64,000 nt of DNA, from assembly GCA_002269645.1 (NCBI GenBank), contig NIVC01000487.1:187825-251824 (forward strand), in the 5' to 3' direction. A model generated the notes under the pieces. The model did no database searches. It was not told the origin of the DNA and saw nothing but the letters and a program-made list of their open reading frames with translations. Shown in pieces: positions 37,193-39,870 of this stretch. Position numbers and translations under genes: made by a program. Position 1 is the stretch's first letter. Every line of letters starts with the position of its first letter. The stretch is from Macrostomum lignano (Eukaryota).

Positions 37193-39870
37193 CTACTCCT
37201 GCTTCTGCTCCTGCTGTTGCTGCTGCTGCTGCTGCTGCTGCTGCGGCAGGGCCGCAGACAGCGGAGAGCCAGCCAGCTCGAACAGCTGCTGCAGACCGAC
37301 AGAGCGACCGCCAGTCACCAGCAGCACAATGTTGGCCGACTGCGGCCTGGCCAGCTGGCCCGGCCCCACGTGTCGGCCATAGACAGCGGCCAGAGCGGCG
37401 CCGCAGACCGGCTCAGTCAGCAGCTGGTGCTGGCAAAGGAAGCTGACGCTGGCCCTGGCCGCCTCATCCTGGCTGCAGGTCACCGAGTGCAACGGCTGCT
37501 CGCGGGCCGCGTCCAGCGCCCGCTGGCACGGCCGGCCGACTCCGCCGCCGCCACCACCATCGAGGCAGCCGCCGTTGGTCGTTCGCAGCTCGGCGGCGAT
37601 CACCGGCGTGGTGACCCAGCCGTAGCGCCACAGGCCAGACACGACGCCGGACAGTAGGCCGCCGCCGGACACAGGCAAAACGATAGCGTCGGGCTGTTCG
37701 CCGTTCAACGCCTCGGCGAGTTCGTCAACCAGGCCGCTGTAGCCCGTCCAGACGTCCTCGCTGTCGAACGGATGCAGCAGGCAGGCGGAGCGGCCCAGCT
37801 GGCCGGCCAGCAGCTCCGCTTGGCTGTGCGCCTCGGGCCAGTCGGCGCCGTGCAGCAACACCTGGGCGCCTTCGTCGGCGATGCGAGCGCGAGCCTCTTG
37901 GGCTACGGCGGCATCGTTGGCATTGGATGCGGCTGATTCGGGCAGCACGACGGTGCACTGCAGGCCGAGACGGGCAGCCGAGTAGGCGCAGGCCAAGCCG
38001 GAGTTGCCGGCGCAGCTGCTGCTGGTCACCACCTATTTATTTATTGATTGAAAGTTGATTGAAAAATACAGATAATGTCCTGACTAACTACTGAAGAAAC
38101 GCATGTTGAGTAGCATTAAGATATCGTGTTTTCCTAGAAAGTCCTACAACTGTGACTAAAATTTGTTGCAATAGTTTACAGTTAAAGCGCCATTCAGCTG
38201 AAAAGATACATCTGATTTGCGAAATTTATAATTTTCTTTGCTTTTTATCCTTCACGTCTGAATTTTGGATACTATTGTATGTGTTGTGATAAGTTTTTGC
38301 ATCCCGTTGCAGTCTGCTATCTGGAACAAGCCATTTGCTTTTGGCCATTCAGGCAAAGCATTTTAAACCATCAGCCTGATTATAGTTCTGCCATATTGAT
38401 GCAATAATGTCCTGCCGTCATGATTTTTAAAGGTGAAAGCTTGCAGTCTGCCTGAGGATCAAGAGGTTGGGATTCCCTGAAAGTTAGGAGGTATTAAATG
38501 ACTACCTGAAGGTTGAGAGGTGCTAAATGACTACCTGAAGGTTGAGAGGTGTTAAATGACTACCTGAAGGTTGGGAGGTGTTAAAGGACTACCTGAAGGT
38601 TGAGAGGTGTTAAATGACTACCTGCAGGTTGGGAGGTGTTAAAGGACTACCTGAAGGTTGGGAGGTGTTAAAGGACTACCTGAAGGTTGAGAGGTGTTAA
38701 ATGACTACCTGAAGGTTGAGAGGTGTTAAAGGACTACCTGAAGGTTGAGAGGTGTTAAATGACTACCTGCAGGTTGGGAGGTGTTAAATGACTACCTGAA
38801 GGTTGGGAGGTGTTAAATGACTACCTGAAGGTTGGGAGGTGTTAAAGGACTACCTGCAGGTTGGGAGGTGTTAAATGACTACCTGAAGGTTAGGAGGTGC
38901 TAAATGACTACCTGAAGGTTGGGAGGTGTTAAATGACTACCTGAAGGTTGGGAGGTGTTAAAGGACTACATGAAGGTTGAGAGGTGTTAAATGACTACCT
39001 GAAGGTTGGGAGGTGTTAAAGGACTACCTGAAGGTTGAGAGGTGTTAAATGACTATCTGCAGGTTGGGAGGTGCTAAATGACTACCTGAAGGTTGGGAGG
39101 TGCTAAATGACTACCTGAAGGTTGGGAGGTGCTAAATGACTACCTGAAGGTTGGGAGGTGTTAAAGGACTACCTGAAGGTTGAGAGGTGTTAAATTACTA
39201 CCTGAAGGTTGAGAGGTGTTAAATGACTACCTGAAGGTTGGGAGGTGTTAAAGGACTACCTGAAGGTTAAGAGGTGTTAAATGACTACCTGAAGGTTGAG
39301 AGGTGTTAAATGACTACCTGAAGGTTGAGAGGTGTTAAAGGACTACCTGAAGGTTGAGAGGTGTTAAATGACTACCTGAAGGTTGGGAGGTGCTAAATGA
39401 CTACCTGAAGGTTGGGAGGTGCTAAATGACTACCTGAAGGTTGGGAGGTGCTAAATGACTACCTGAAGGTTGGGAGGTGCTAAATGACTACCTGAAGGTT
39501 GGGAGGTGCTAAATGACTACCTGAAGGTTGGGAGGTGCTAAATGACTACCTGAAGGTTGGGAGGTGCTAAATGACTACCTGAAGGTTGGGAGGTGCTAAA
39601 TGACTACCTGAAGGTTGGGAGGTGCTAAATGACTAAATGAAGGTTGAGATGTATTTAACGATTACCTGAGGATTGAGAGTGAAATAGCGCCATAAACTCA
39701 CGTGAGTGAAGCCCCGCTCAGCGGCCCGCCGCACGGCGTGAGCCATGCCGCGCAGGCACACGGACCCAGTTGGCTGGCAATTCTCCAGTTTGAGCCAAAC
39801 GCGGCAGCCTTTGATGCCCATAGCTCTGGCCAGTGGCCGACTTTCAATCAGCGGAGTCCGCACGTGCAGC
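37193..39870 (-). CDS. L-serine dehydratase/threonine deaminase-like (SDS/SDSL, PLP fold type II) domain, catalytic Lys replaced
   Basis: LHVRTPLIES...VWLKLENCQPTGSVCLRG, SSCAGNSGLACAYSAARLG, HPFDSEDVWTGY, PDAIVLPVSGGGLLSGV, LTEPVCGAALAAVY and VLLVTGG are collinear with animal SDS motifs. Confidence 0.9.

Follow-up and report, generated by a model that had tools for sequence, protein, structure and literature searches.

A serine dehydratase fold without its Schiff-base lysine at the C-terminus of an ELAV-type RNA-binding protein of Macrostomum lignano

The contig NIVC01000487.1 of the Macrostomum lignano assembly GCA_002269645.1 contains, between positions 187,825 and 251,824, a minus-strand gene that joins two ELAV/Hu-type RNA recognition motifs (RRMs) to a C-terminal serine dehydratase (SDS) fold of the PALP family. 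This whole stretch of 64,000 nucleotides is referred to below as the window, and all positions follow its own numbering. In the SDS fold of this fusion gene, the lysine expected to hold pyridoxal 5'-phosphate (PLP) as an internal aldimine is read as cysteine. The locus therefore raises two questions, namely whether the loss of the lysine is real and, if so, what keeps such a domain attached to an RNA-binding protein. The evidence presented here indicates that the domain is probably a dead enzyme kept by selection, with a scaffold or dimerisation module as its likeliest role.

On the minus strand, GGG TCC GTG TGC CTG CGC GGC translates as GSVCLRG, and the TGC codon (39758..39756) supplies Cys488 of a 785-aa product. 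In every alignment of the 321-aa spliced domain to chains of the Protein Data Bank (PDB) by phmmer, this cysteine occupies the column of the lysine of GSFKIRG, the best match being human SDSL (2rkb, E 1.4e-45), along with human SDS (4h27/1p5j) and rat serine dehydratase (SDH, 1pwe). The lysine codon of the stand-alone M. lignano SDS is AAG, from which TGC differs at all three positions, so a single base-call error is excluded. GSVCLRG is moreover encoded at 3 loci of the assembly, the window (PAA82197.1), L002 (PAA73106.1) and L003 (PAA69090.1), and the same cysteine in three gene copies rules out a sequencing error. The translation of the window is identical to PAA82197.1 and shares 99% identity with PAA73106.1. 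No compensating lysine lies next to the site in the 321-aa domain, which retains two lysines, in GIKG and WLKLEN, both far upstream in sequence; that of WLKLEN is the equivalent of the conserved Lys30, also found in active enzymes. A previous sequence-only reading of this DNA had reported GSVCLRG in place of GSFKIRG and had argued that a single base-call error could not explain the TGC codon. Both statements are borne out by the alignment to Lys41 of the SDS, SDSL and SDH structures and by the agreement of the three loci, and the lysine loss also stands against the possibility of a substitute lysine nearby, none being seen in the domain.

The gene model was derived by hand from four minus-strand exon blocks delimited by GC content (Table 1). 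It has canonical GT-AG sites and compatible phases, and the open reading frame (ORF) and all splice sites are intact; the frame resumes at 38032 after …atag/ with VVTSSSCAGNSG (a slash marks an exon boundary). The model equals PAA82197.1 exactly, and the NGLQ/GPEW junction is found in both PAA73106.1 and PAA82197.1. The GenBank gene models of this assembly derive from RNA-seq and transcript assemblies and are not ab initio predictions (PMC5730564), so their match to the exon model provides transcript support for the fusion ORF. Two separate genes, one for the RRMs and one for the SDS-like part, were considered and rejected, as the phases fit, the transcript-derived models match and orthologous fusions exist. 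A bacterial-style single ORF was rejected in view of the eukaryotic region, the GT-AG introns and the GC-rich exons, and identity with melav1 or melav2 was rejected because the product of melav2, of 422 aa, contains 3 RRMs (PMC2795745).

Comparison of the copies shows exon 3 (565 nt) to be 100% identical between the window and L002, with collinear blast blocks of about 93–98% identity across introns and flanks. L003 (NIVC01001348.1) carries all four exons, but 1 nt is missing from a G5 run within the linker part of exon 3, equivalent to position ~40223, as a result of which PAA69090.1 begins at an internal methionine (MVDSLL...). This deletion may reflect either a homopolymer error of long-read sequencing or a genuine frameshift giving a PALP-only product. 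Read-through of the exon 2 donor (44041-44046) gives GGG TGA, so an unspliced mRNA would yield an RRM-only protein ending in ...GFGSGG, which is the exact end of UniRef A0A1I8I0G4.

The 785-aa protein begins with its two ELAV/Hu-type RRMs, which are followed by some 180-200 aa of disordered linker and then by the C-terminal SDS fold, of the fold-type II PLP class. Pfam RRM_1 is matched twice (E 3.5e-38) and PALP (PF00291) once over model positions 5-295 of 295 (E 5.3e-53). AlphaFold2, run on a 74-sequence alignment, gave predicted local distance difference test (pLDDT) values above 90 for RRM1, RRM2 and the PALP domain except its poly-Gly loop; the linker has low pLDDT, and the poly-Gly replacement, at about 52-55, is predicted to be disordered. 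A Foldseek search with the C-terminal domain placed rat SDH (1pwh) at the top, with a template modelling (TM) score of 0.85 and a root-mean-square deviation of 2.6 Å, followed by human SDS and SDSL, while the RRM pair retrieved HuR, HuD and Sxl. The best non-fusion sequence relatives of the RRM part are likewise ELAV-like proteins (E ~1e-41). A third RRM was found neither by Pfam nor in the AlphaFold2 model, the PALP domain being at the C-terminus instead. The linker contains a motif (ELLDLLD / EEMVDSLLMF) that is kept in all members of the fusion family and predicted to be helical.

Examination of the active site, with residue roles as generally described for these enzymes and as aligned to PDB chains, shows damage beyond the lysine. 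The asparagine of the Asn67 loop (S-x-G-N-A-G), a loop that in active enzymes contacts PLP O3' and the carboxylate of the substrate, is present, but the loop reads SSSCAGNSG with a 2-aa insertion; the phosphate loop SGGGLL keeps 4 of the 5 positions of GGGGL (168-172), with G168 replaced by serine; and EPVCGAALAA is retained. Phe40 is replaced by valine (F40V), a stretch of about 14 residues that takes in human 216-224 (ITSVAKALG) has given way to NGGCLDGGGGGGVG, and Cys303 of VCGGSN is replaced by threonine in LLVTGGRS (C303T), at a position whose residue in rat SDH we take to contact the pyridine N1. The retention of GN, SGGGLL and EPxCGAALAA and the poly-Gly replacement noted earlier are thus all seen in the alignments. 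At the level of sequence, the claim of a pseudoenzyme also holds, since the lysine that serves as Schiff-base partner and catalytic base, Phe40 and the PLP-covering loop are lost, the lysine in all three copies. It is strongly indicated that the domain would be unable to form the internal aldimine, would have no catalytic base and would have a PLP pocket that is damaged further. The dead domain has 12 cysteines, and the stand-alone paralogue, on our reading of its sequence, has about as many; a cysteine-lined metal site formed by Cys488 and the cysteines of SSSCAGN and GGCLDG would be speculation.

Despite this damage, the dead domain is not in neutral decay; the counts are small but consistent. 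Between the window and L002 the coding sequences differ at 10 synonymous and 3 non-synonymous sites, giving a ratio of non-synonymous to synonymous proportions (pN/pS) of 0.11 (binomial p = 2e-4 under neutrality), and the PALP domain alone has 6 synonymous and 3 non-synonymous differences (pN/pS 0.19, p = 0.015). The third copy, L003, adds 3 synonymous and 1 non-synonymous, so that all three copies together differ by 13 synonymous and 4 non-synonymous changes. Tajima relative-rate tests of the dead domain against the intact stand-alone M. lignano SDS showed no significant excess for 6 of 7 outgroups. Modest acceleration was observed for the other lysine-less lineages, Trichobilharzia szidati having 20 unique changes against 8 (p 0.02) and Mesocestoides 42 against 25 (p 0.04). 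The proposal that the domain is still under structural selection is upheld by these rates and ratios, by the intact ORF and splice sites and by the predicted structure, with its pLDDT above 90 across the domain and its TM-score of 0.85 to rat SDH. Loss of an essential catalytic residue and evidence of purifying selection, which together characterise a pseudoenzyme, are both found here.

The fusion is not confined to M. lignano. The family was sought exhaustively in 1.8 billion representative proteins and in two word-indexed searches, and proteins combining RRM and PALP were found in Paragonimus spp., Dicrocoelium, Opisthorchis, Clonorchis, Echinostoma, Fasciolopsis and Calicophoron, in five Schistosoma species, Heterobilharzia and two Trichobilharzia species, and in the cestode Mesocestoides corti. 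The protein collections searched contained no orthologues from other Macrostomum species. Precomputed Pfam annotation assigns PF00076 and PF00291 to all fusion members, and the RRM1 signature is nearly invariant in the family (EDRSRTNLIINYLPQ…GASLCYGFVDF, also written DRSRTNLIINYLPQ...GASLCYGFVDF). The M. lignano protein has this signature and the family architecture RRM-RRM-linker-PALP in one ORF. The O. felineus gene, 9.6 kb long with introns of ~30 nt, encodes the linker and the start of PALP including the lysine in one exon, which excludes an annotation artefact as the source of the fusion in that species. A neighbour-joining (NJ) tree places all flatworm PALP domains in a single clade (75% bootstrap support) and groups the neodermatan fusions with 87%. 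Public databases list these proteins under automatically assigned names, 'L-serine ammonia-lyase' and 'serine dehydratase-like' among them. The literature search found no publication on an RRM–SDS fusion or its lysine loss, and no useful expression data under Mlig gene identifiers were found in the main texts or supplements searched.

The state of the active site differs between lineages. Paragonimus, Dicrocoelium, Opisthorchis, Echinostoma, Schistosoma and Heterobilharzia have GSFK(I/V)RG with the asparagine and GGGG kept. T. regenti has GSYKIRG with the asparagine lost, T. szidati GSFEIRG with GDGG, Mesocestoides GSVVLRG with GCGS, and Macrostomum GSVCLRG with F40V, G168S, C303T and the 216–224 loop lost. 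Most members accordingly have K in the lysine column; T. szidati has E there (its sister T. regenti K), Mesocestoides V and Macrostomum C. Since most trematode orthologues still have GSFKIRG, the fusion is older than the loss of lysine. The ancestral fusion therefore possessed the lysine, which has since disappeared on at least three occasions, with a different residue in its place each time. On these sequences, the fusion is taken to be ancestral to Macrostomorpha, Trematoda and Cestoda and to have begun with a complete active site. F40V and I42L are common to Macrostomum and Mesocestoides, which looks like convergent relaxation once there is no PLP ring to stack. These comparisons modify the sequence-only reading. 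Its suggestion that the domain was co-opted into an RNA-binding protein is supported by in-frame cis-splicing to two RRMs and by the same fusion in trematodes and a cestode, but the order of events it implied does not hold, as fusion came first and catalysis was lost later and repeatedly, not as the cause of co-option. The comparison with orthologues that it had proposed as a check of the K-to-C change gives C in the Macrostomum copies, K in most trematodes, E in T. szidati and V in Mesocestoides.

SDS domains that keep the lysine were also observed in other fusions. A PDZ-like region (our own reading) precedes SDS in the nemertean Tubulanus polymorphus, and a long N-terminal leucine-rich-repeat-like region precedes a lysine-bearing SDS in one further protein; these N-terminal fusions are unrelated. 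The SDS fold seems prone to recruitment as a C-terminal module.

M. lignano also possesses a stand-alone SDS (PAA55083.1), which keeps GSFKIRG, GGNAG, GGGGLL, TSKATSLG and VCGG; on contig NIVC01002812.1 its gene has a cyclin gene on one side and a troponin gene on the other. It is 49% identical overall to the fused domain, with the N-terminal stretch PLHVRTPLIESRPL..GCRVWLKLENCQPTGS almost identical, and its first intron is at the same position as that between exons 3 and 4 of the fusion gene. Downstream of the fusion gene, blastn and tblastx revealed a troponin-T-like gene paralogous to the troponin of NIVC01002812.1 (L001 14379-19552), with order and orientation alike; the paralogous troponins downstream of both SDS genes make the two blocks syntenic. 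The troponin pair has pS 0.52, pN 0.05 and omega 0.06, and the locus of the O. felineus orthologue has no adjoining troponin. This arrangement suggests an old duplication of an SDS and troponin block, after which catalysis would have been kept by the stand-alone copy and the fused copy would have been free to lose it. Because the troponin pS is near saturation for genes biased in GC content at third codon positions, and because the NJ node joining both M. lignano PALP domains has only 52% support, this order of events, and any dating of the lysine loss from it, is tentative; a lineage-specific partial duplication of the fusion gene is one possible candidate for the origin of the stand-alone gene. 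In the large database, the closest non-flatworm relatives are bacterial 'phenylserine / serine dehydratase' proteins of Pseudomonas and Cupriavidus, at 44-45% identity, and human SDS, at 39-42% identity to the M. lignano SDS domains, is about as close. The closeness of bacterial sequences may be a product of database composition.

The explanation that we consider probable is that the SDS domain of this ELAV-type fusion is a dead enzyme retained by selection. With the aldimine-forming, catalytic-base lysine replaced by cysteine, Phe40 by valine and the PLP-packing loop deleted, the M. lignano domain would be catalytically dead, and dehydratase chemistry would presumably be supplied by the stand-alone SDS paralogue, which has all catalytic motifs. 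The fused domain would act as a folded scaffold or dimerisation module at the place where ELAV/Hu proteins carry a multimerising RRM3, the outcome being a dimer that binds RNA with four RRMs in all; some non-covalent binding of ligands could persist through the phosphate loop, the asparagine and Thr303. Mammalian SDS crystallises as a homodimer. RRM3 mediates multimerisation in ELAV and HuR (PMC2275111, PMC6344896), and in C. elegans CBS-1 a dead fold-type II PLP module is kept for structure (PMC3316156). The structural module is preferred because of the SDS homodimer, the RRM3 position and the CBS-1 precedent taken together. Several points weigh against this explanation. The loss of activity is judged from residues only, the dimerisation role is pure inference, and the between-copy selection test is based on only 13 to 17 substitutions. 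The retention of SGGGLL and the asparagine would also fit ongoing ligand binding in place of a purely structural role. L003 has its deletion in the linker, and Met352 and the stop just after the exon 2 donor would permit RRM-only and PALP-only products. Finally, most trematode orthologues look catalytically competent from their motifs, so catalysis may be ancestral to the family and perhaps its main function, in which case M. lignano would be the exception.

Among the alternatives, the one with most in its favour is a metabolite sensor, an idea that remains credible although it is rather unlikely: the dead pocket would bind PLP, pyridoxamine 5'-phosphate, serine or a relative non-covalently and convey to the RRMs whether it is occupied, so that mRNA regulation would respond to amino-acid or vitamin B6 status. 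Three PLP-contacting elements survive, namely SGGGLL, the asparagine of AGN and a threonine hydroxyl at the N1-contacting position 303, and the glycine loop has drifted in other lysine-less lineages (GCGS in Mesocestoides, GDGG in T. szidati), so its retention in M. lignano may be meaningful. However, Phe40 and the 216-224 loop (the Ala222 face), which sandwich the pyridine ring, are both lost, a 2-aa insertion falls within the substrate-carboxylate loop, and the poly-Gly replacement is predicted to be disordered; the deletion of the PLP-covering loop in particular weakens the idea. The broader version, in which the fusion is a protein-level link between serine or vitamin B6 and mRNA regulation and the Macrostomum pocket was repurposed, once a duplication had passed catalysis to a stand-alone copy, as a non-covalent sensor with allosteric control over RNA binding, is doubtful. 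If true, it would mean that the ancestor was an active enzyme tethered to or regulated by RNA, and that lysine-bearing and lysine-less lineages represent the states 'before' and 'after' a transition from enzyme to sensor. A heterodimer in which the dead domain regulates the active stand-alone SDS, or tethers it to ribonucleoprotein particles, appears improbable. In M. lignano the fused copy, which is dead, does exist alongside an intact stand-alone one with a near-identical N-terminal stretch, and live enzymes activated by dead paralogues are known, as in trypanosomatid deoxyhypusine synthase (PMC3663545), but an overall identity of only 49% speaks against such a partnership.

The view that the C-terminal domain is a tolerated relic, functionless and slowly drifting while the RRM part alone matters, is given little credence. 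It could draw on damage that extends to several catalytic elements, on the modest acceleration in T. szidati and Mesocestoides, and on a possible RRM-only product through the stop reached on read-through of the exon 2 donor; against it, 321 codons are intact in three copies with pN/pS 0.19, the rate is no higher than that of the active paralogue, the fold is predicted with high confidence, and the difference of TGC from AAG implies that the loss is not recent, yet neither a frameshift nor a stop has followed. An enzyme that still works through another residue, through other cofactor chemistry (for example with Cys488 as nucleophile) or by an external-aldimine-only mechanism is very improbable. 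Cysteine is a nucleophile, and in some PLP enzymes mutation of the lysine to alanine leaves PLP binding and a slow formation of external aldimines, but just two lysines occur in the domain, both far upstream with no compensating lysine near the site, further pocket elements are deleted, and no fold-type II enzyme is known to us to dispense with the lysine. Least probable of all is an artefact, whether a miscalled or misassembled codon or two neighbouring genes wrongly annotated as one. The assembly is PacBio-based, one copy contains a homopolymer indel, and in older annotations the RRM part (A0A1I8I0G4) and the PALP part (A0A267F5P6) appear as separate proteins; nevertheless, the codon is three nucleotides away from a lysine codon and the same at three loci, splicing is canonical, in frame and in agreement with the transcript-derived models, at least 12 further, independently annotated flatworm genomes carry the same fusion, and in O. 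felineus one exon covers both parts, so this explanation is effectively refuted.

The preferred reading, a dead SDS domain retained in an RNA-binding protein, brings together in one polypeptide pseudoenzymes and RNA-binding metabolic enzymes, both active research topics. Precedents exist for dead PLP-fold domains and for RNA-binding metabolic enzymes taken singly, but none is known for their combination or for the flatworm series of live and dead domains. The series is a comparative one, with a fusion that, judged by its motifs, still seems active in most trematodes, schistosomes and liver flukes among them, and with independent deaths of the domain in Macrostomum, in one bird schistosome and in a cestode. 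RNA interference, transgenesis and in situ hybridisation are established in M. lignano, which makes the role of the dead PLP domain directly testable. The name 'L-serine ammonia-lyase' is almost certainly wrong for the lysine-less members, and it hides the RNA-binding half of all members.

The remaining content of the window is given with the features of the fusion gene in Table 1. Every intron of the fusion gene contains a large minisatellite; the lengths of these arrays vary between the M. lignano copies, while the exons are still 98-100% identical. A 15-nt array at 8890-9547 lies inside an intron of the troponin gene. ARAGORN found no tRNA genes in the window.

Table 1. Positions of the fusion gene, its motifs and intronic arrays, and the other genes or gene fragments of the window
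Feature	Position	Strand	Description
Exon 1	50449..51156	(-)	start ATG, RRM1 and most of RRM2; ends NGLQ/gtgaga
RRM1 in exon 1		(-)	RNP2 LIINYL; RNP1 LCYGFVDF at 50893-50916
RRM2 in exon 1		(-)	RNP2 LYVSGI; RNP1 KGVGFVTF at 50500-50523
Exon 2	44044..44288	(-)	cag/GPEWPAPLLVKFAED, the end of RRM2, then Gly/Ala/Ser-rich linker to GFGSGG; phase 2 (GG/gtgagc)
Exon 3	39702..40266	(-)	linker, then N-terminal part of the SDS-like (PALP) domain; ends GFTH/gtgagt
Conserved linker helix motif IEEMVDSLLMFNALG	40131-40175	(-)	exon 3
Internal in-frame ATG (Met352)	40164-40166	(-)	exon 3
GSVCLRG motif	39747..39767	(-)	read 39767..39747; Cys488 for PLP Schiff-base Lys41, Val487 for Phe40
Exon 4	37193..38032	(-)	remainder of PALP, polyglutamine tail, TAG stop
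Asn loop SSSCAGNSG	37997-38023	(-)	exon 4
Phosphate loop SGGGLL	37652-37669	(-)	exon 4
Poly-Gly TTNGGCLDGGGGGGVGRP	37529-37582	(-)	exon 4; replaces the PLP-covering loop
EPVCGAALAA	37385-37414	(-)	exon 4
LLVTGGRS	37301-37324	(-)	exon 4; Thr for Cys303
Minisatellite	46821-50411		31-nt unit, ~115 copies, 3.6 kb
Minisatellite	44329-45035		15-nt unit
Minisatellite	43296-44019		32-nt unit
Minisatellite	40417-41982		20/40-nt unit
Minisatellite	38476-39669		29-nt unit, 41 copies
PPR-repeat gene	55879-59811	(-)	upstream of the fusion gene, likewise upstream in L002
Tyrosine-kinase-like exon	14678-15064	(-)	E 2e-3
Troponin-T-like gene	5496..9753	(-)	downstream of the fusion gene; blastn and tblastx
Rhodopsin-type seven-transmembrane fragment	893-1477	(-)	Pfam 7tm_1, E 1e-4

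Comparison with known systems places the M. lignano protein between several of them. The N-terminal module of C. elegans CBS-1 is also of the PALP family, binds no PLP and performs no catalysis, and is a conserved structural part of its protein (PMC3316156). It belongs, however, to the CBS subfamily and not to SDS, and is fused to a live copy of itself instead of RRMs; its case is experimentally shown (PMC3316156), whereas that of M. lignano is read from sequence and prediction. Mammalian SDS and SDSL (1p5j/4h27, 2rkb, 1pwe/1pwh) have the same fold as the M. lignano domain, with Foldseek TM-scores of 0.83-0.85, about 35% identity and phmmer E values of 1e-44 to 1e-45, and share with it EPxCGAALAA and, in part, the asparagine motif, into which 2 residues are inserted, and the Gly-rich phosphate loop, four of whose five positions are kept. 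The M. lignano domain differs from them by the substitutions K41C, F40V, G168S and C303T, by deletion of loop 216-224 and by insertions of 2 aa and 9 aa, and it forms the C-terminus of an RNA-binding protein, whereas mammalian SDS is a free enzyme.

On the RNA-binding side, ELAV/Hu proteins and Sex-lethal (HuR 4ed5, HuD 1fxl, Sxl 1b7f) resemble the fusion in their tandem N-terminal RRMs with intact RNP1 and RNP2, and ELAV/Hu proteins also in the hinge after RRM2, but ELAV/Hu proteins have a third RRM at the place where the fusion has its SDS-fold domain. The ELAV genes of M. lignano, melav1 and melav2, are distinct from the fusion gene. The closest counterparts are the RRM and PALP proteins of trematodes and cestodes (Paragonimus KAF5394515.1, O. 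felineus TGZ73053.1, S. japonicum and Mesocestoides VDD76155.1), whose architecture is orthologous and which share with the M. lignano fusion P(E/D)W..PL at the end of RRM2, the linker helix motif and the C-terminal PALP. Most of them keep GSFKIRG and look catalytically competent, which M. lignano does not. In neodermatans RRM2 is degenerate, with RNP1 lost and an insert of ~30 aa, and a long conserved extra tail ending in ...LNPHDLVNFSKLLA follows at the C-terminus, whereas M. lignano has an intact RRM2 and no such tail. The two halves of the fusion thus appear to have undergone reciprocal decay, with RRM2 intact and PALP dead in M. lignano, and RRM2 degenerate and the PALP motifs mostly intact in neodermatans.

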